A stretch of DNA of 64,000 nt, taken from NCBI RefSeq assembly GCF_964204865.1, contig NC_135259.1, positions 20,150,001 through 20,214,000 on the forward strand, written 5' to 3'. A program made the position numbers and the translations under genes. This DNA is from Styela clava. Lineage: Eukaryota. This document shows, piece after piece, positions 40,801 to 61,129 of this stretch. The stretch's first letter is position 1. Every line of letters begins with the position of its first letter. Below the pieces are notes generated by a model. The model was not told the origin of the DNA. It did not search any database and saw nothing but the letters and a program-made list of their open reading frames with translations.

Positions 40801-42149
40801 GTTATCCTAACGGTATCTCGAATGGGTGTTTCACGCAACCGCTGGTCGGTTACGGCTTTCCCCACCATCAAGTCCATGCTTCGGAAAACAAATAACTGGC
40901 TAACTAATTCCATACTCGACATGGACTGGTAACCGGACGAGAGGCCTTGGTTCGCCATTGGTTAAGCCGTCTTATCGGCTTTCCTCTCCCCGGGATAAAC
41001 ATGTAAATCCTCTCTCATCCTATAGACTATAGCCAAGTTTCGTTTAATTGTTATCTTCCTACTTCTCTTTAGCATTAATATATATATATATATAAATCTT
41101 CACGTGAATCTTTGGCCGCTTACAACTCTATTTCCACTTTTCACTATTTGTTGAAAACTCGGAATTTACTTCGAACTATACCTTATTCAAAAAATTTTCT
41201 TCATAAATGGCATCCAAACAAGAAAAACAAGAACGAAAGTCTGGGACTAAAAATAGGTATGAGAAGGAATTTTAGTAATTTATTTATTTTAATATATATG
41301 GTGTCCATGAAGTTTTGAAATATTTTTAAAATTTTAAGGTGAAATTATCAATATCAAATATTGTTTTGGCCCTTACAGATATATTAAATGAAGTAAAAAT
41401 ACTTGAACAATTACTGATTAAAAAACAACAAACCTGGTTAAGATATATTGGAAACTGACTTTATACCAAAATTGAAATTGTGAAGGGACTTTATGGACAA
41501 CCCGTATTTACCAAAGTTGAGCATTAATTTTGAAGTAGAATCCTAGTAATTGTAAGCTGTGACTCCAGTGAAAATTCAAAGTTACTTCGAAATCTGTGAT
41601 TTGAATAATCTTGCAAAAATAAGAGAGCGATACTCAAATATATGGTCACGAAGCTCAAAACGAAGTAATAAGAATCTTTACAGAAACGGTAATCTTCCTT
41701 TTTTTAAAATGTCCCGACTTCAATGTGCACGAAATCGCTATAATGTATTCGTGGAACCGCAATCATGATGTGCAATTTTTGTTACACCCGTAGTGTGTGT
41801 ACCAATTTTGGATTAAGCGATAATTTTATTCCGATTTTTGTTATTTTAGTTCTATTATGAGTTTGGGGACTGTCTGTGTCAGCCAAGTGAAAATACCCTC
41901 TGTCCATAGCTTTCAGTCCCTTTGGACAACTTGATGTAAAGTAAGCGAACAAAATTAGTTACCTCCATATTGGTACACACACTTCTGAAGCGCCCAATGT
42001 TTAGCTTTAGGGACGTCATCACGCAAACCTTTCATGTGAAAAACAAATTCCATAGATCATTTCCACCAACAACAACAATATTAACGATAAAAACCGATCA
42101 ATGGGTCCATTTTGTGCCCAATAACAGTTGAAAGAGCAGTAATGTACGC

Positions 42150-42302
42150 GTTGCAATAATTTTACAATAGGCGGAAACAATAACGCGCTAGTATTATAAA
42201 CAGTATACAGTAAAATCAGTTACAAATAACGGTTATTAAATTAAGTTTGAAGCGAGATTCATTTGCCGCTGGTGAATTATAACACTGTGAAAGCACTATA
42301 AG
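42150..42302 (+). promoter_or_regulatory. Candidate core promoter and non-coding first exon of TPR copy A (second copy at about 39140-39305)
   Basis: CGGAAAC (ETS-like), TATAAA at 42195 and TCAGTT Inr-like at 42216 are conserved in both copies. Possible donor ag|gtatat at 42302. TATA-Inr spacing is somewhat short. Confidence 0.35.
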
Positions 42303-42420
42303 GTATATAAGGCGTTAAGTCGGTAGAATATATTGCGGTCCGATTGCTGAATTCTCACCGCCATGAGTAAATGGAATGGAAAAATTGTGCGGCCCGCGAA
42401 ACGACTTTTGAATTTCGTTT

Positions 42421-42593
42421 AATCTGGTACATGCGAGTATTTCTAACCCTGGTCTTAATCTGGTACATGCGAGTATTTCTAACCCTGGTCTTAATCTGGT
42501 ACATGCGAGTATTTCTAACCCTGGTCTTAATCTGGTAAATGCGAGTATTTCTAACCCTGGTCTTAATCTGGTTAGTGCGAGTATTTCTAACCT
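42421..42593. repeat. 36-bp tandem repeat x about 4.8, inside a degenerate hAT-type MITE
   Basis: aatctggtacatgcgagtatttctaaccctggtctt, head-to-tail with no spacers. Confidence 0.95.
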
Positions 42594-42885
42594 GTTTGTA
42601 TTGCAAAGCCTATGCTTGAGTAAATATTTCAAACAACCCATGTCAAAAGATCAATCAAATCTGTCTACAACTACTAGTAATCCCATGTTAAATAAAAATG
42701 CTACACACGGTCCCACCCAGTTATTTGTATCTGATCCTTCTAAATTAGAAGTTACACACTCCTGATATAAACTATCGAATTTGAATGAAAAGTAGCGGAA
42801 CCTTTAGACTGTATTTTCAGAATCATTGCGTACAGCGGAATCCCGAGTAAAAACCATTCTTATAATGTAATACTTTTGATTCAAG

Positions 42886-45800
42886 GTCCACACCATATTC
42901 GGAGTATGAAGACCCAAGTCAGTTGAAAGGCGAAGCAAGTAATTCTAAACCAGACGATCAGAACAGACAGGCCCAGTATGTACCAGGTATGTGAACGTAA
43001 ACAAAATGTAATGCGGAGGTTCCCCGAAACTTATGGGATGGGCTTTTCCAATCAAATATTCGAATCGAATAATAATCTATTCGAATCTACTAACACTAAA
43101 ATTTCGAATCGTCGCCATCTTGTTTTATTTTGTCCACCAAAGGACGAGGTGAATTTTTGGTACACCTGAAGTATGTTTATCAAGATGGCGGATGTGTACC
43201 AGGCTAGGGTTAGGCCATAATTTTGTTCCAATTTTCCTTATTTTAGTTTTATTACTAGTTCGGGGACTACCCAAGTGACTCCCGTAGTATTTGTACCTAA
43301 AATTATGGGCTAACCTTAACCTGAAATACATACTACGTTCCGTTGTCCGCCATCTTGGTACGCATACCTTAGGAATACCGAACTTTTTCATTGCAGCTAT
43401 ATTTTCAAAATATTATCTGGTATATGTTCCAGTGAGTTATTGATAAAGTAATGTTTTTTACTGTGTGTAACAACTAAGCGAACTGTCTCATTGATGGATT
43501 ATATGCAGTAAAATTATTAAAACGAATAACAGGTCAAATTTCTGTCCCAAACCAAACTTGTTTCTAATCTATATTACAATTCTGTACATTCATTTTAAAC
43601 AAGGATATTGAAATAAAAAATTTTCCATTTAGAAAAAAGAAGTGATTACGAAGACAGAGATTTCAGTACACATAACATTGCGCAGCTTACTTCGTACGAA
43701 GACTTTTCTCCTGATGGAAGAACTACAAGCTCAGAAGGTAAAAGTAGAAATGCAGACTCGAATCAACTCCATGTCATTCGATTATCCGACGCCATATTGA
43801 AAAATTCATTTTAACCCTTTACCAGATACGATTCTCTCAAAAAAATTGACTCCGGCTCTACCTCAAAACTATTGAATAAAAATTTTTCTCAATGCCGCTG
43901 GCTGAATTCCGATTCCGGATTCACAATCCGGTTAATAAAATTGACTCCGGATTTATGCTTCCATCAAAATTACTAAATTTACATTTCACACTTGACTCCG
44001 GGTCCTGAATCTTTTCGAAAAATGACTCCATCTCACTAGATCGGTGATTTTCAACCTGGGTTCCGCGGGATTGCCGACACGTTCAATCCGATTCCGAGTG
44101 GGAACTCCGGTAAACAAAATTGACTCCGGATATATTTCTTCAATTAGATTAGCCATATTTGAGCTCTTTATATTTAGCGCCGGATTCGTAATCCCTATCT
44201 AAAAAGTGACTCCACCTCTCTAGATCAGTGGATTTTGCGACACTCTTGGGTTCCGCCAGTAGAGTCAAGGAATTCCGGAAGTTTTCACTTAGATCTGAGA
44301 GTCTATATTAACATGTGTATATTGTTTTAATATATTCAAATATATATTAGAGTTGCCATTATTATTAAGTTTACTACAGTCCAAAGATCATTTAGTTTTG
44401 CCAGTATTAGGTTTGTTTTTGTATATAATCATAGTTTATACATTTCAACCAAATTAAAACAAAAATAAACTATAGCACATGGGTTCCTAGCGCCTAAAAA
44501 ATGTTTTGTTGGGGTCTGCTCCATCGGAAAGGTTTGAATAACCACAGATATTGAAATGAATTATATTACATTTAGATAAAAGAAGCGATTACGAAGACAG
44601 AAATTTCAGTACAATTAACATTGCGCAGCTTACTTCGTACGAAGACTTCTCTCCTGATAGAAGAACCACAAGCTCGGAAGGTAAAAGTAAAAATGCAGAA
44701 TCGATTCGAATCCATGTTATTCGAGTATCCATGTTATTCGAGGCCGGATTTGACTCACTCAAAAAATTGACTTTGGCTTTACCTCACGATTTTATAACAC
44801 CAGCCTTTCTCAATTACGCAATATGGAATCCAATTTCGGATTTCAATTCCGTTCAAAAATAGACTCTGAATTGATTTGATCCGCTAAATTGATTAAAGTT
44901 GGCACCAGATCCGGAATTACAGTCAAAAAATGACTCCATCTCTCTAGATCAGTAGTTTTTCAAAATCGGTTCCGCGGCACCCTTGGTGTTGCGCCAATGC
45001 AGTACGGGGTCTCGCAATTTTTCTTTTAAATCCGAAAGTTGATATTAATATATTTATATATATGTTGTTTTAATATAATCGAATACCTATTAGGGTTGCC
45101 TATAACACCAACCTTTATTAATGAAACTATCTGGAATCAGATTCCGGATTCAAACTTCGGTCCAAAAATTGACTCCGCTTCACAACTAAAATATTATGAA
45201 TTTCTCAATGACGCAACCTCGAATCTTATTCCGGATCCAAACTTCAGTTTATTAAATTGAATCCGGATTTATGCTTCTATCAGATTGATTCAATTTAAAC
45301 TATGCACAGCTGGCTCTGGATCCGGAATTTCAGTCAAATGATGACACTATCTTTTTGGATCGGTGACTCACAGCCACGAGGTTGCCGACGCGTTCCATCT
45401 GATTCCGAGTCGAAACTCCCGGATATAATTCTTCATTTAGATTAGCCATATTTGAACTCCATGAATTTAACTCTGGATCCGGAATCCCAGTCCGAAAAGT
45501 GACTCCACCCCCCTGATCAGTGGTTTCCAAACTGGGTTCCGCGACACCCTAGGATTCGGCCACAGTACGGTATGGTGGTTACGCAAATTACCATTTGATT
45601 CTGCTCCAACAAAAAGATTGAAATCCTTTTTGTACACAGATATTGAAATGAATTATTTTACATTTAGAAAAAAGAAATGATTACGAAGACAGAGATTGCA
45701 GTACAATCAACATTGCGCAGCTTACTTCGTACGAAGACCCTTCTCCTGATAGAAGGACCACAAGCTCAGAAGGTAAAAGTAGGAATGCAGACTCGATTCG

Positions 45801-47780
45801 ACTTGATGTCATTCGATTATCCGATTCCCGACTACATATCGAAAAAATGCTATCCCAATGCCGGATACAATTCACATAAAAATGGACTTCCGCACTACCT
45901 CCGGCACTATTCTCTATGCCGCTATCTAGAGATCCAACTCGGATTCAAATTCTGGTCAAAAATTGACTCCATGTCATTCGGGTATCCGGATTCCATTCAC
46001 TTGAAAAAAAATTTACTCCGGCTCTACCTCACAACTATAGAATGACAATCTTCTTCAATGCCGCCAGCTAAAATTCGATTCCGGATTCAAACACCGGTGC
46101 AAAAAATGGACTCCGGATTTATTTTCCATTAGCCATATTTGAACTCTTTATATTTAACGTCGGATCTGGAATTCCATTAAAAAAATGACTCCACCTCTCT
46201 AGATCATTGGTTTTCAAACTGGGTTCCGCGACACTCTAGGGTTCGGCCATAGTGCGGTAAGGGCGTTATGCATATTTTTAGTTGATTCTGCCCCACCAAA
46301 AAGGTTGAATTATACACAGATATTGAAATAAATCATCTTACATTCAGACAAAAGAAGCGATTACGAATACATAGATTGCAGTACAATTAACATTGCGCAG
46401 CTTACTTCGTACGAAGACTTCTCTACTGATAGAAGCTCAAAAGGTAAAAGTAGGAATGCAGACTCGATTCGACTTCATGTCATTCGGTTATCCGACTCCC
46501 GACTCCATATTGGAAATATTCTAACCTTTTGTCCGAATATCATTCACTTTGAAAATAATTGACTCCGGCTCCACCTCAAGATTTCATAACACCAATATTT
46601 CTGAAGGCCGCTAGCTGGAATCCGACTCCGGATTCGAACTTCGGTTAAAAAAAATTGACTTCGGATATATTTTCCATTAAATTAACAATATTTAAACTCT
46701 TTATATTTAACTCCGGCTCCGATTCTTGGTTGAAATTGACTCCGTCTCTGGAAATATTTATAAATAATAAAATTTTTGCAAATTTCATTCTGATCTGAAA
46801 AAAAGTTTTTACTCCAACTCCTAGAGATTTTAAAATGCCACTCCGATCACGACTCGATGTACAAAAATGTTTGTAGAAAGCGTTGTCTCGAGATATAATT
46901 AAGTTCAAGGTAAATCTGTCATAGAAATTACTAATCGTACGATGTATGTATTACAGAAAGGCTATTATTATTAACCACATTGACAGTCGATACAGTCAAA
47001 CTCACACGGGCTTTATTTTTTATTTCAGATTTTCGTGAAATCGTTATTAAAATATTATTCGAGCGGATGACAATGATAGAAAAGACAGTGGAAACTCTGA
47101 AAAATCGTCAGGATGTATTAGAAGGATTGTGAGTAGCCATTTTGTAATTTTAACAACCTACCAGCATTTAGAACAGTGGTTCTCAAACTTTTTAAGCCTC
47201 GTCTTGCGCCCTACCTTAAAAATCAGGCGAGAGTGTGTTTTATCAAAAAAAAAAAAAAACGTTGAAAATAACTGGACGGAACGTAAATATTAAAATAAAT
47301 AAAATGTACATATACAAAAAAAATCTACCATTTATTTTTATTTTTAATAACTTTACGCCCCCTCAAAAATGCCTCATTGTGGGGCGCGCTCAACCGTTTT
47401 AGAATCATCAGATTGTTGCTTATGAATTAAAAAACAATTGAAATTTTGTAAAAGAACTAATTAACTTGACGCCAGGTTCCTCCCCAAGATAATTAACAAA
47501 TACCTAAAGCGTTTGTGAAACTTACAATACTTCTAATAGAAAAACTTTGCGAGAATATTTGGTTTTATTATAATATTTGGCACAATAAATCCCCAAGTTT
47601 GACTTCGGCTCCGTTTTTTTTATAAATATGACTCCGGAATCGACTCTAATTATAAAACTCCGAACACCCCGCATCTACCAATTGCAAATATTGCACTACC
47701 AGCACTACTTGTACAACTTGGCGTCGGAGGGTGAAAATTTCCCAAGCCGTGCTGATGAATTGAGGAACTTAGCATTGGTT

Positions 47781-47817
<37 letters not shown>

Positions 47818-50133
47818 GCGAGTGTAGCGATAGGCTGTGGTTCGCCATATAATTGAACTTTCCGAGCAACTTTTCAATCTTTGCGTTACATATACTATTT
47901 TAAATCTTTAGAAACTCAGAAGCAAAGACCTCCAAGCCCAAGAAAGAAAAGTCAAAAGTAAAAGGTGAATGGGTTCTGATCTTTAACTTATTACCTTTGA
48001 ACCTTGAGTGATATTTTTCGATAAACTCAGCACGATGACGTGTCCCTCAAATATAGTTTTTGTTGAAAGCAGTTTCTGTAGAGCAGGGGTTCCCAAACTG
48101 GGGTCCGCCACGATGTGAAAAGACTCTAATCTTAAATGGTTGATTTTAAACAAAAAGCCACTGCATTTTTTTGGTTGATCGTGACAGAAGAATATCCATT
48201 GCTATCAGAAAATGCTATTAAAATGGTTAGACACAGAAATTGAGACGGCATCGTATGTTGTTCCGTCAAAAATAAAATTCAAAAACAAGGGTGCGAAGCT
48301 CAAAAAGTTTGGGAAACCCTGCTGCTGTAACCCAATTTCCTCCATTCGTCTATTCTTGGACTTTTTATTCCGCCTTCAGTAAGCATGAATAGTGCTTTAT
48401 TAATGTAATCTTTAATGGATCCTTAGCCAGTGTTATGCGCAAGCCACAATTCCGCTTTTGTATAGTTCAAGTAGTTTATAATGTGTAATTAAGTAAAAAT
48501 TACAGTGATATGAAGAATTATTATTAATAATAGAGAGAATCCAAAGCAAAATCGCTCCGAAGAACGACAAAATATCTCTTTGGGAAAGACTTGCTCCCCG
48601 GTTGAGATAAACGGTTCAAATGAGATTTGATTGTTTTAGTTTCAAACACGATTCGAAACTAAAAACCACTAATAAGTATAAAATATGGGTTTGAACGTGA
48701 GAAGTCGAACCTCAACGCCAACAACGACTTTAGTAATAAACCTTCGTCGCTCCAGAAGTATGTGTACCAATATGGAGGTAACTAATTTTGTTTGCCTACT
48801 TTACATCAAGCTGTGTAAAGGGACTGAAACCTATGGACAGGGGGTATATTCACTTGGCTAACACAGACAGTCCACAGACATTTACCTCAATGGGTCAATA
48901 GACTTTTGGATAAATAGACTTGTAACAATGCCAACGGCGCCCATGTAGTATGCAAACCAAGATGGCGGTCACCGGAACGTAGATGTGTACCAGGTTAGGG
49001 TTAGGCCATAATTTCAGGTTTAAGTACTGCGGAAGTCACCTCGCTAGTCCACGAACTCGAGATATAAATAAAACAAGGAAAATTGGATTGAAATTATGGC
49101 CTAACCCTTACCTGGTACACATACTACGTTCCGGTGTCCGCCATCTTAGTTCACATACTACGAGAGCGCCATTGTAACTATATTCGTGACAATTCAACTC
49201 TACGTACCGGTATCGGCATTGCGGGATCTCCGCTTTCCCGCCGCGAATATCCTTCCGCTTCGAATTGTGGCCCCTACTCAATCAACTTTGGAAACTACCG
49301 CCCTAAACGAATTGAAATTCATTCCTAAACGACAAACTTTCGTTATAGGTACACCAATACCAGACGCTATAAAACCAATCAAAAGGCAAAAACGTACTTT
49401 GCAATCGTTACTGGATGAGCTTCACAACTCTTACATGGCAGGAAGAAAATCAAAAGCAAATTTTTGTTTGAGCGAGATCAAGAAATTGATGACGTCATCA
49501 AATAGACCCAAAGCAACCGAGGTAAAAAAAATGGCCGAAAAATACATTGATAACCCATCCTATATCAAAGCTGCTATTCTGCTTTCTTGGGCGGCTGAGC
49601 TGCATGTTACGGACTCCGACCCTGATGAGGCTGCACTTGCAATCGCCGATTGCGCTCACATTTATGTTCAAGTCATCGGACATATGATTGATCTCAAAGG
49701 AAAAATGCACACAATAGCCAAAGACTTTGGTGTGGATATCATTCTAAAAATGCTTGGAAATCTACGAGGCATCACATCAGCCGATGTTATGTTTAAATAT
49801 GAAACTCGTACTTTAAGTAACGTAGGTACGTGCCATAATAGGTTAGGTCACAACTCAGATGCGATCAAGTTTTATCGCCAGGGAATGGATTTGTTTGAGA
49901 GAAAATACGAAAGCAAAGCAATGGAGCTTTATGATTATGGTACACTACTACACAACACAGGAGTGGCTCATTCGCATTTAGGAAATAACGCCGAAGCTGA
50001 AAAATACTACCTGGATGCCCTCAAATCATACAAAGCTTCAACAGACTGGAAATACAAGGGCCAGAAAAAGGATTTAATAACAAACACTGAAGAAAAGTTA
50101 AAACGCTTACGCCTGGAGTTTAAAAATGAATGA
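42886..50133 (+). CDS. TPR-like helical-repeat protein, copy A, with N-terminal tandem Tyr-motif exons and a short coiled-coil-like segment (start codon unresolved)
   Basis: Exons 42886-42986, 43633-43737, 44576-44680, 45668-45772, 46348-46443, 47029-47128, 47912-47964, 49349-50133 are AG/GT-bounded and join in one frame (about 482 aa). The last exon has TPR consensus segments TLSNVGTCHNRLGHNSDAIKFYRQGM and TLLHNTGVAHSHLGNNAEAEKYYLDAL. The minimal version from ATG 47067 is 299 aa. Confidence 0.75.
43633..43737 (+). CDS. Repeat exon 1 (KRSDYEDRDFSTHNIAQLTSYEDFSPDGRTTSSE)
   Basis: catttag|...|gtaaaa, 105 nt, phase 1-1. Confidence 0.7.
44576..44680 (+). CDS. Repeat exon 2 (DKRSDYEDRNFSTINIAQLTSYEDFSPDRRTTSSE)
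   Basis: catttag|...|gtaaaa, 105 nt, phase 1-1. Confidence 0.7.
45668..45772 (+). CDS. Repeat exon 3 (KRNDYEDRDCSTINIAQLTSYEDPSPDRRTTSSE)
   Basis: catttag|...|gtaaaa, 105 nt, phase 1-1. Confidence 0.7.
46348..46443 (+). CDS. Repeat exon 4 (DKRSDYEYIDCSTINIAQLTSYEDFSTDRSSK)
   Basis: cattcag|...|gtaaaa, 96 nt (in-frame 9-nt deletion), phase 1-1. Confidence 0.7.
49349..50133 (+). CDS. Terminal TPR exon of copy A
   Basis: Long ORF with acceptor ttcgttatag|GT, about 82% amino-acid identity to the paralog at 61458-62248. Confidence 0.9.
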
Positions 50134-50477
50134 GCTTTATAACAATACCGGCTATGACCGTAATCCAAATTAGACAAGTTATACTCAAGCATAGTGATCT
50201 TTTTATTTAGTCTTCAGGATTAGTTATTTTTATATACTTTTTTGAAACTCTTATTATTTTCGTGGAAATTTCTCCCTGTTGTGACCCTATGATCTTAATG
50301 ATCTAATCTGGAAAATTCTTCTTTCAAGGATGACTGATTGTTTTTGACATATCATCAATGTTTAAAAACAATCCATATAATTCATCACACATCTCGTTAG
50401 ATATCATTTACTACATGCAGAGCCCCGTTTCGAGTGAGCGCTACAAATGTTGCTTAGACGTTATTTTTCTCATTTGC

Positions 50478-58086: not shown

Positions 58087-59984
58087 AAAAATTGTGTGTT
58101 TGAAATATTTTAGTCGAGGTATACTCCTCTTGAAAGTGTATGGAAATTACTGAACACAAGTATGCCAAATCATTTGCTTCTTCATTTCTACAGAGTATTT
58201 TTCCGAGTGATGGCGTGTGAACCATCATAAAATACTGGAACCATATGTTTCCAAAAATGTGTGGCAGTGGCTATTTTTCAAAAGTCTTGTTATAAAGCCT
58301 CACTTTAGTCTCATGAAACGTCACAGAAGTATGTTAGTGTCCAGAAAGACTTTTAAATCACTTATAGTAGGTATCATATATGATTATTTCATGGGTACTC
58401 TCGTAGTATGTGTAACACATTAGAGTTAGGCCAATATTTTATCCCGATTTTCTTTATTTTATTTCTACTACGAGTTCGGGCACTGTTTGAGTTAGCCAAA
58501 TGAATATACCCTCTACCAATAGGTTTCAGTTTCTTTATATAACTTTATGTAACGTGGGCGAACAAAATTAGTTACCTCCATATAGGTACACACACTTTTG
58601 GGTCGCCCATTTTATGTAAAATAATAAAAATTGTTGCCTTATTGAACTATAGCTTGAGAAATTCAACAAAACAACAATATAGTGGAGTTCAAAAGACCAT
58701 GTAATTAAAAAAAATTACAAATGATTTTTTAAGAACTTCGCTAACCTAGTCACGCCCTACCAACGCACATTTTTGAAAAGAAACAATTTTCATTGTTGTG
58801 ATTCATATCAGCTCTACAGCGCCATGTCACGGTTCTGACCAAAGAGCAACTTAACACCAAGATTTGCAAAGAAGGAGGATAAACTGAATGTATTGTACTG
58901 AAATAGAGCGTTTGCTAAGACTAATACGATTTTTAAAAATCGTGATTTTTTTCTGTCTGTATTTGCTACACACTTTATCACATTCCAGGGTGATGTAGCG
59001 GACGCAGGGAGTCCACCATAGATATACCGCCCGATCATGAAAAATTGGTGTTCACTCTGAGTAATTCACTCTTTTTATGCTACACAAAAGGGCTATAAAC
59101 TTTCTTACAATGATCAAATGTGGATGTTGATCACATCGTATTTAATCCAAGACGCCAATATAGTTCGATGCAGAGCTAATCATTTGGCCTTCGCCATCAA
59201 ATCTTAAAATTATAACAAAAAAATACTAAGTATTGATAACACGAAAAACTGAATATATTTGCATGATAAAACTCTGAAAAACTGAATATTTACATTAGAC
59301 ACGTCTATTAAACGAAAATAGAATAAGAAATTTACCGTCAAGCCACTGATATCTCATGATGTAAAAGGCCTACTAATGTGGCTTACCATCTAATCTCAGA
59401 AGTTCTTAAAAGAAAAAATATTAGGTCTTAATAACACGAAAAACTGAATATATTTGCATGAAAAAAAACTATGAAATGAGAAAAATATGAATAACTGAAT
59501 ATTTACTCTGGACACGTCTATAAAACGAAAATAAAATAAAAAAAATTGAATTTCTTAGCTACATTTGAATATCTTTGCATGAAAAGAGAAATCATTGAAA
59601 AAAGAAAAATACTCAAAAATGTAAAGAAATGAATATTCACTCTGGACACGTCTATGAAACGAAAATAAAAAGCGCTCCTGTAGTATGTGAATCAAGATGG
59701 TGGACACCGCAACGTAGTATGTGTACCATAATTTTATTTTTTCCTTCTTTTGTTCTATTGTGAGTTCGGGGACTAGCCAAGTGACTCCCGTAGTATTTGT
59801 ACCTAAAATTATGGCCTAACCCTAACCTGGTACACACTACGTTCTCGTGTCCGCCATCTTGGTATAAATACTGCAAGATTATCAAATAAAATAAGAAATT
59901 TATCGTCCACGGCTACGCTACAGTAAAATACATTTGCATGAAAAGTGAATACAATAAAAAGAGAAAAAACTCTAGAATATGAAG

Positions 59985-60545
59985 AAGTCCAAGTTTCATA
60001 TTCAAACATAACCTCGGCATCGGCTGATGTGATGCTTCGCAGATTTCTAAGAATTTTCAGAATGATATCCACACCAAGGTGTTGCATACCAAGGTCCATT
60101 TTTCCTCCGAGATCCTTAATATGTTTGATAACTTTAACATATTTGCGAGCACACTCGGCAATTTCATATGCAGCCGTATCTAGGTCGGAGTACGTAACAT
60201 GCGGCTCAGTCGCCCAAGAAAGCAATATAGGAGCTTTTATATAGACTTTATCAATATATTTATTGGTGCTCCCGAAGTATGCGAACCAAGATGGCGGACA
60301 TCGGAACGTAACATGGGTAACAGGTTAGGGTTAGGCGATAATTTCTTTCCAATTTGCCTTATTTTAGTCCTATTATCAGTTCGAAGACTAGCCAAGAGCC
60401 TCCCGTAGTATTTATACCTAAAATTATGGCCTAAACCTAACCTAGTACACATATTACATTCCGATGTCCGCCATCTTGGTTCGCATACTTCGGGAGCCCC
60501 TCTTTATTGGTCATTTATGTTACCCATGTGTGAGGAGCTGCTAAC
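59985..60545 (-). pseudogene. Fragment of a third TPR paralog
   Basis: Translates YIKAPILLSWATEPHVTYSDLDTAAYEIAECARKYVKVIKH..GVDIILKILRNLRSITSADAEVMFEYET. It is interrupted by a MITE (60265-60500), has an in-frame TAA near 60518, and is truncated at both ends. Confidence 0.85.
60265..60500. mobile_element. MITE subtype B (about 235 bp, long palindromic arms), representative copy
   Basis: TSD tatttatt/tctttatt; removing it restores alignment to the TPR paralogs. Other copies: 9355-9555, 28623-28855, 43159-43379, 48936-49170, 51275-51479, 59671-59883, 62445-62676. Confidence 0.9.
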
Positions 60546-60619: not shown

Positions 60620-61129
60620 CAGGAGTGTGCAAACTGCGGCCGCGGTCCAAATGCGGTCAACGAAAAAAAATTGTTTGTCTGCAAAGAAGTGCTAATTTTG
60701 AATGGTGTACGGCCCTCGGAACGAGTTTTTAATTTAGTTTTATTAGTACGGGTGATTAATTCAATTTCTTTGCGTTGCAAAGGTTATACCTGTACTTGTG
60801 CGAGGCGAACAACGCATGTCATAAAATCAATAACCAAAATTTTTGCGCGTGAAATACTAAAAAGCTTATGTTAAATGCAGATGTGGCCCGCGGTTTCACC
60901 CAGTTATTTGTATCTGAACCTCCTGTATTGAAGTTTGCACACCCCTGATATAAACTATCGAATAGAAAGTAGCGGAACCTTTAGACGGTATTTTCAGAAC
61001 CATTGCGTACAGCGGAATCCCGAGTAAAAACCATTCTTATAATGTAATACTTTTGATTCAAGGTACACACCATATTCGGAGTATGAAGACCCAAGTCAGT
61101 TGAAAGGCGAAGCAAGTAGCACACCCCTG
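60620..61129 (+). mobile_element. hAT-type MITE with duplicated right terminus enclosing about 170 bp of captured host sequence
   Basis: caggagtgtgcaaac...gtttgcacacccctg [sequence matching 42765-42940] gcacacccctg; flanks acctagga/gcctagcg. Confidence 0.75.

Follow-up and report, generated by a model that had tools for sequence, protein, structure and literature searches.

In the ascidian Styela clava, a nine-exon gene encodes a tetratricopeptide repeat (TPR) protein whose N-terminal tail contains units encoded by tandemly duplicated exons. The gene lies on the + strand at positions 41207-50133 of a 64,000-nucleotide (nt) stretch of contig NC_135259.1 (C13 below; 20,150,001 to 20,214,000, forward strand), and this whole stretch is referred to below as the window. 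Judged from the sequence, the architecture put forward in a preliminary description of this DNA holds: the protein begins with a repeat tail, continues with a predicted helix and a linker, and ends in a variable TPR domain. We consider it probable that the repeats form a genuine coding tail and serve a soluble adaptor as a multivalent array of motifs. The gene itself is an already predicted, uncharacterised member of a TPR-scaffold group with a tail produced by exon duplication, and any signalling function of that tail is hypothetical.

The reading rests first of all on the four tandem units in the region 42500-47200, which follow one another with start-to-start spacings of 943, 1092 and 680 nt. 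As had been proposed, each unit holds an AG/GT-bounded exon (105, 105, 105 and 96 nt); the four exons share a single open frame, offset 2, which makes the introns flanking each of them phase 1, and 9 nt is the sole length difference among them. Phase 1-1 boundaries, lengths in multiples of three, intact AG/GT sites and units of 680-1092 nt together make up the pattern of a frame-neutral, symmetric tandem exon duplication. One 35-residue unit, KRSDYEDRDFSTINIAQLTSYEDFSPDRRTTSSE, is encoded per repeat exon, and DYE(D/Y)...SYED(F/P) occurs in each of the four. With the YSEYEDP contributed by exon 2, the tail has nine tyrosines in the form of YED or YEY. Both the splice phases and the identity with the annotated protein place the repeat exons in frame with the heptad helix, the Lys-rich linker and the TPR exon.

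Frame conservation among paralogs, on which the idea of a translated tail hinged, proved to be complete. We found 11 genomic copies of the repeat exon at four loci: four in the present gene (copy A), two in its neighbouring inverted copy (copy B, LOC120345730), three in copy C (LOC144422135) and two in locus D (LOC120338056). The same frame is open in 11 of 11, and their indels (-9, -6 and +3 nt) are multiples of three. In the seven gap-free copies from A, B and C, codon positions 1, 2 and 3 hold 6, 5 and 13 variable sites, respectively, with the third-position excess seen in that frame only. Moreover, the pairwise ratio of nonsynonymous to synonymous differences per site (pN/pS) among the repeat copies of these three loci is mostly 0.1-0.6. 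These comparisons indicate that the repeat exons are real coding exons under purifying selection.

The nine exons of the complete gene model total 1500 nt, that is, 499 codons plus a stop, and have canonical splice sites and compatible phases (Table 1). The product is identical to RefSeq XP_077973442.1 (hereafter P0005), a 499-residue "uncharacterized protein LOC120345633 [Styela clava]"; the whole codons of every exon were compared one by one with this entry, and the match is exact and consecutive. Two parts of the preliminary description need correction. The start codon, which it left unresolved upstream of 42886, could be placed at 41207 with the help of paralog protein models. Its repeat exons, presented as hidden and as the mark of a candidate new family, are in fact annotated: exactly this nine-exon model is present in RefSeq. 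XP_077973442.1 is a computed model, unnamed, unpublished and lacking a functional description. The close paralogs XP_077968097.1 (LOC144422135), XP_077973534.1 (LOC120345730) and LOC120338056 are likewise computed RefSeq models that lack a name and a described function, and a full-text literature search for "Styela clava" together with "tetratricopeptide" returned no relevant publication.

Table 1. Exons and associated features of the gene and of its inverted neighbour (positions in the window)
Feature	Position	Strand	Remarks
Exon 1, start codon	41207..41256	+	16 whole codons + 2 bases; GT donor, phase 2; P0005 residues 1-16; tblastn of paralog models
Exon 2, encodes ...YSEYEDP...	42886..42986	+	AG/GT, phase 2 in, phase 1 out; P0005 residues 18-50
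Repeat exon 1, 105 nt	43633..43737	+	phase 1-1; P0005 residues 52-85
Repeat exon 2, 105 nt	44576..44680	+	phase 1-1; P0005 residues 87-120
Repeat exon 3, 105 nt, SYEDP variant	45668..45772	+	phase 1-1; P0005 residues 122-155
Repeat exon 4, 96 nt, DYEYI variant	46348..46443	+	phase 1-1; 9-nt in-frame deletion; P0005 residues 157-187
Intron block, ~52 nt, directly after donor	45773..45824	+	equivalents at ~43738-43789, 44681-44732 and 46444-46495; 88% mean identity among four units
Helix exon, hydrophobic a/d pattern over 3.5 heptads	47029..47128	+	I194, L197, M201, I204, V208, L211, Q215, L218 of P0005
Lys-rich linker exon	47912..47964	+	segment of isoelectric point 10.6 together with start of last exon
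Terminal exon: 260-residue TPR-like solenoid, 11 helices, stop codon	49349..50133	+	open reading frame, Pfam TPR_12, AlphaFold2, Foldseek
Copy B (LOC120345730), TPR exon	61461..62255	-	
Copy B, linker exon	63595..63645	-	

The exon had been described as more conserved than its intron. This is true of the distant intron and of the sequence before the acceptor, but not of the first bases after the donor: mean pairwise identity among the four units is 86% in the exon, 88% over the 50 bp after the donor, 71% over the 50 bp before the acceptor and 42-52% further out. The intron block responsible for this is also present beside the repeat exons of copies B and C, where it is 86-95% identical, and has no other occurrence in the genome; no such block follows the final repeat of copy C, and locus D has none either. 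Its divergence is lower than that of synonymous sites (proportion of synonymous differences, pS, 0.2-0.3). The block may thus be a splicing control element or, alternatively, a gene-conversion tract that extends slightly beyond the exon. Short tandem and dispersed repeats surround and pervade the gene (42315-42641 and introns within 43800-46800); they include a 25-nt tandem run near 42500 and units of 50-118 nt, rich in GACTCCGG, that recur in every repeat intron. A search of 41000-50300 against Rfam found nothing.

The encoded tail (residues 1-187) is acidic and strongly hydrophilic, with an isoelectric point (pI) of 4.58, a grand average of hydropathicity of -1.61, 41 Asp/Glu, 47 Ser/Thr and 12 Tyr. 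Among the tyrosines, nine are those of the YED or YEY mentioned above; of these, two stand in YEDP and four in Yxx[F/I]. The most constant element of the repeat lies elsewhere: the core FSTIN(I/F)AQLTS is near-invariant and better conserved than the repeat tyrosines. Residues 188-221 form the putative helix, with hydrophobic a/d positions across 3.5 heptads, a pattern retained in the paralogs. In structural models a helix (184-226) appears solely in a low-confidence single-sequence AlphaFold2 (AF2) prediction, in which the predicted local distance difference test score (pLDDT) of the whole protein is 43; the beta strands that the same model draws over the repeat cores are not to be trusted at this score. 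No membrane segment was detected (the maximum 19-residue Kyte-Doolittle mean, 1.41, falls inside the TPR helices, and the N-terminus is charged), and neither hydropathy nor Pfam gave a signal peptide or a PH/PTB domain in P0005. Neither the tail nor the helix has a Pfam match, nor do the N-terminal parts of the paralogs, and the ESM Atlas yielded no usable match for residues 1-240. Two other functions considered for the tail were set aside: tyrosine sulfation, since there is neither a signal peptide nor a membrane segment, and an LC3-interaction motif (acidic residues followed by FSTI), as its Phe is Cys in repeats 3 and 4.

For the C-terminal domain, Pfam TPR_12 (PF13424) scores 36.7 bits against the exon and 34.0 bits against the whole protein (gathering cut-off 30.1), and TPR_10 likewise exceeds its Pfam cut-off. 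The AF2 model of the domain, built from a 27-sequence family alignment, has a pLDDT of 93.5 and a predicted template modelling score of 0.87, and shows 11 helices stacked as a solenoid; the domain is basic (pI 9.14). The best Foldseek matches are the TPR domains of KLC1/KLC2 and LGN/Pins, with template modelling (TM) scores of 0.5-0.59. In a VIA structural search, many TPR and 14-3-3 solenoids are tied at Z 15-18. At the sequence level, the family profile matches KLC1 with E = 4e-12, limited to two repeats (profile positions 198-278), and phmmer with the single sequence found no relative in the PDB at E <= 0.01. Judging by these models and profiles, the fold is a generic peptide-binding solenoid with repeats of the kinesin light chain (KLC) type, and not a KLC orthologue.

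How these parts might work together can be outlined as follows. Tandem duplication of frame-neutral exons adds 35-residue units to the N-terminal tail, which would turn it into an array of a short linear motif in which the core FSTINIAQLTS[Y/F] is flanked by Tyr-acidic and CK2-type Ser/Thr-acidic sites. The valency of such an array would depend on how many exons there are and, possibly, on exon skipping, while the helix may pair chains and the groove of the TPR domain may bind a peptide ligand. A motif array, a chain-pairing helix and a peptide-binding groove would together make a soluble modular adaptor rather than a membrane receptor. 

Several points weigh against the reading of the tail as a multivalent array. 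We infer its disorder from composition and from the low-confidence single-sequence model. The intron block matches the exon in conservation, so exon conservation could partly reflect recent duplication or gene conversion instead of protein constraint. Expression, junction use, exon inclusion and skipping all rest on computed RefSeq models. Finally, copy B has no ATG in exon 1 in this assembly, and the protein of its current RefSeq model begins at the helix-exon Met; at least one paralog can therefore do without the tail.

The gene has many relatives in its own genome. At least 95 stretches of the S. clava genome match the TPR exon, many of them in tandem arrays, and all full-domain TPR matches with a named organism, in a search of 1.84 billion representatives, come from this species. 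Of four family members known solely from Logan contigs, two, P0048 and P0069, are just 29-38% identical to the S. clava genome and therefore belong to another organism. The tail (residues 1-222) matches only S. clava paralogs, and a hidden Markov model (HMM) search with the 35-residue repeat, suggested by the preliminary description, likewise brought up only the known repeat-bearing proteins. That description also spoke of a variable TPR end, and rightly so. Between copies A, B and C, the ratio of nonsynonymous to synonymous substitution rates (dN/dS) of the TPR exon (49351-50130, +; 61461-62249, -; L003:1498-2286) is 1.04, 0.72 and 0.72, far above that of the repeat exons, in which purifying selection prevails. 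Thus, a conserved tail sits on a fast-changing domain.

The paralogs differ in how many repeats they carry. The count, another of the checks suggested earlier, came to four in copy A, two in copy B, three in LOC144422135 (copy C, protein P0004, on contig C4) and two in LOC120338056 (locus D). The idea that valence is tunable by copy number or skipping is partly supported by these numbers; as to skipping, RefSeq isoforms P0155 and P0118 of LOC120338056 differ by exactly one repeat exon (one isoform has one repeat, the other two), both being computed models. Two further RefSeq isoforms of LOC120338056 diverge at a CAG/GT tandem donor, which changes one residue. In an older RefSeq release, LOC120345633 itself was modelled with three repeats (P0003), and that release contained a two-repeat paralog (P0002) for which the present assembly has no equivalent exceeding 80% identity. 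These differences between releases hint at haplotype or individual variation, although they may also come from assembly error.

Copy B and locus D each lack a part of the gene. In copy B, the helix exon, the two repeat exons and remnants of exons 2 and 1 lie beyond the window end; the exon-1 remnant (L042:7178-7290, -; C13 ~20219178-20219290) keeps its 3' half and donor but has no ATG. Repeat DNA of the GACTCCGG type, like that in the introns of copy A, occurs upstream of this remnant. Locus D (C13 ~17.32 Mb; L044:7158-9656, -) is a short paralog in which a tail with two diverged repeats precedes the helix and linker exons; a TPR exon is lacking. Inside the window, an exon-2-like fragment, SRYTPYSEYEDPSQLKGEASST, at 61058-61123 (+), on the strand opposite to copy B, adjoins the TPR exon of the latter. 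A TPR-exon fragment at 59809-60264 (-), corresponding to about domain residues 63-156 at ~65% identity, lies between copies A and B and probably stems from a pseudogene.

More distant members of the family carry tails of other kinds. YED occurs two to three times in the otherwise unrelated tails of the distant paralogs P0023, P0026 and P0033, at 27-29% TPR-domain identity (each P < 1/2000 by shuffling). Among members encoded on other chromosomes (P0012, P0033, P0037, P0058, P0080 and P0020), an N-terminal module ending in I[GD]Q[IV] at about residue 45 is shared, and one has PSAP and PPPY instead. We considered whether the repeat core NIAQLT is a homologue of this NIGQIT-type motif and dropped the idea, as an HMM of the 11 repeats gave no such match. 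Taken together, these members point to a family in which TPR domains are combined with exchangeable tails that carry motifs.

If the tail is real, what its repeats do may be explained in more than one way. It could be mainly a Ser/Thr-phosphorylated or polyacidic disordered region, carrying CK2-type sites or acting as a charge-driven or chaperone-like spacer, in which tyrosines would be incidental aromatic "stickers". The composition of the tail agrees with this, as 20 of its 47 Ser/Thr fit [ST]xx[DE] and its Asp/Glu are abundant, and so does the tolerance of Tyr-to-Phe swaps in locus D; the Lys-rich KPKKEKSKVK...KRQKR, which resembles a possible bipartite nuclear signal, would also be compatible. 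However, the 35-residue register is fixed, the 11-residue core FSTINIAQLTS is near-invariant and YED turns up again in unrelated tails. All three features favour a specific motif over bulk charge, and we regard the Ser/Thr-acidic explanation as unlikely.

A different possibility, closest to what was originally proposed, is that the YED tyrosines are phosphorylated by Src/Syk-type kinases, making the tail a phosphotyrosine (pTyr)/SH2 docking array of tunable valency on a cytosolic TPR sensor. Kinases of the Syk and Src families prefer tyrosines with acidic neighbours. Nine tyrosines of the hydrophilic tail are in such a context, some of them in YEDP or Yxx[F/I], three distant paralogs have YED-enriched tails, and the repeat copy number varies between paralogs and between isoforms. 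On the other hand, the tyrosines themselves are not well kept. Both repeats of locus D have Phe in place of the Tyr of SYED, followed three residues on by a Tyr, and in one of its DYED motifs the Tyr has become His; the second repeat of copy B has no DY, repeats 2 and 3 of copy C read YKD, and the best-kept residues belong to the non-Tyr core. P0005 also has no membrane anchor and no targeting domain of the PH/PTB type. SDYEYI (residues 159-164) does fit the consensus [SIVL]xYxx[IVL] of an immunoreceptor tyrosine-based inhibition motif (ITIM), as had been noticed, but it occurs once only, in this copy only and in a soluble protein; the other ten repeat copies have DYED, DYKD, EYKD, DHED or nothing at this place. 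No YxxL/I pair with the spacing of an immunoreceptor tyrosine-based activation motif (ITAM) was found in P0005. The paralog comparison thus weakens the signalling claim for the tail somewhat, and we judge a pTyr docking array to be distinctly unlikely.

It is also conceivable that the acidic-aromatic repeats are ligands of the basic TPR groove of their own chain or of a paralog, resulting in autoinhibition or head-to-tail assembly that scales with repeat number. The contrast in charge between the tail and the TPR domain (pI 4.6 versus 9.1) is in line with this, and the nearest solved natural relatives are the KLC1/2 TPR domains, including their complexes with Y-acidic peptides (6fuz, 6fv0). 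The positively charged groove of KLC binds Tyr-acidic peptides, and a cis LFP-acidic segment of KLC itself competes for the same site (PMC6214655). The two proteins also share a layout, with a heptad helix, predicted in P0005, that precedes the TPR domain. The structural similarity is generic, though, given the many solenoids with tied scores, and locus D has repeats and a helix in the absence of a TPR exon, which implies that the repeats also function, or persist, without a TPR domain in cis. All considered, self-binding, a role suggested by analogy with KLC, seems to us improbable. Least credible of all, and highly improbable in view of the open frames, in-register indels, third-position excess and pN/pS below 1, of the intact ATG and splice sites of copy A and of the inclusion of the repeats in the RefSeq models of copies A, C and D, is the notion that the repeat exons are untranslated or pseudo-exons and that the product starts at the Met of the helix exon, as it does in P0001, the model of the ATG-less copy B.

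The gene provides a clean and recent case of frame-neutral exon duplication altering the number of copies of a short linear motif in a probably disordered tail, with copy-number differences visible between paralogs, annotation releases and predicted isoforms. Its TPR family is large, unstudied and fast-evolving, in a chordate related to the vertebrates. Should the partner of the motif be found, the family could reveal in what way a variable recognition domain is linked to various cellular machineries in ascidians. At its broadest, one could envision the YED-repeat tail as a signalling array (pTyr or acidic-aromatic docking), its valency governed by exon number and by regulated skipping under the control of the 52-nt intron block, and mounted on a fast-diversifying TPR domain. 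Together with sister genes bearing PSAP/PPPY or I[GD]Q[IV] tails, it would then form an ascidian-specific modular sensor-adaptor family, possibly with an immune role. This broad proposal is a long shot.

Comparison with known systems helps to position the protein. Like LAT, the Gab/IRS/Dok adaptors and immunoreceptor tails, P0005 has several acidic-context tyrosines in a hydrophilic, probably disordered segment; unlike them, it possesses neither a transmembrane segment, nor a signal peptide, nor a PH/PTB domain. Its motif, YED[F/P], also differs from the YxxL/I pairs of ITAM/ITIM tails, and its tyrosines are unconserved in locus D. LGN/Pins, HOP TPR2A, sNASP, PlcR/NprR and 14-3-3 resemble it in fold, with Z 15-18 over ~130-200 residues, but their tied scores are near the helical-repeat background and come with no sequence relationship, so that only a generic scaffold shape is shared. 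The closest parallel is with kinesin light chain, the nearest natural PDB match by both the family profile and Foldseek (TM ~0.5-0.57), in which a heptad helix lies N-terminal to a TPR solenoid, as the predicted helix does in P0005. Even here the resemblance is partial: TPR identity is 16-18%, the profile match covers two repeats only, and P0005 has no homology to the heavy-chain-binding heptad region or to the whole six-repeat domain. What sets P0005 apart from kinesin light chain is that its acidic motifs form a tandem array in the same chain as the putative groove.

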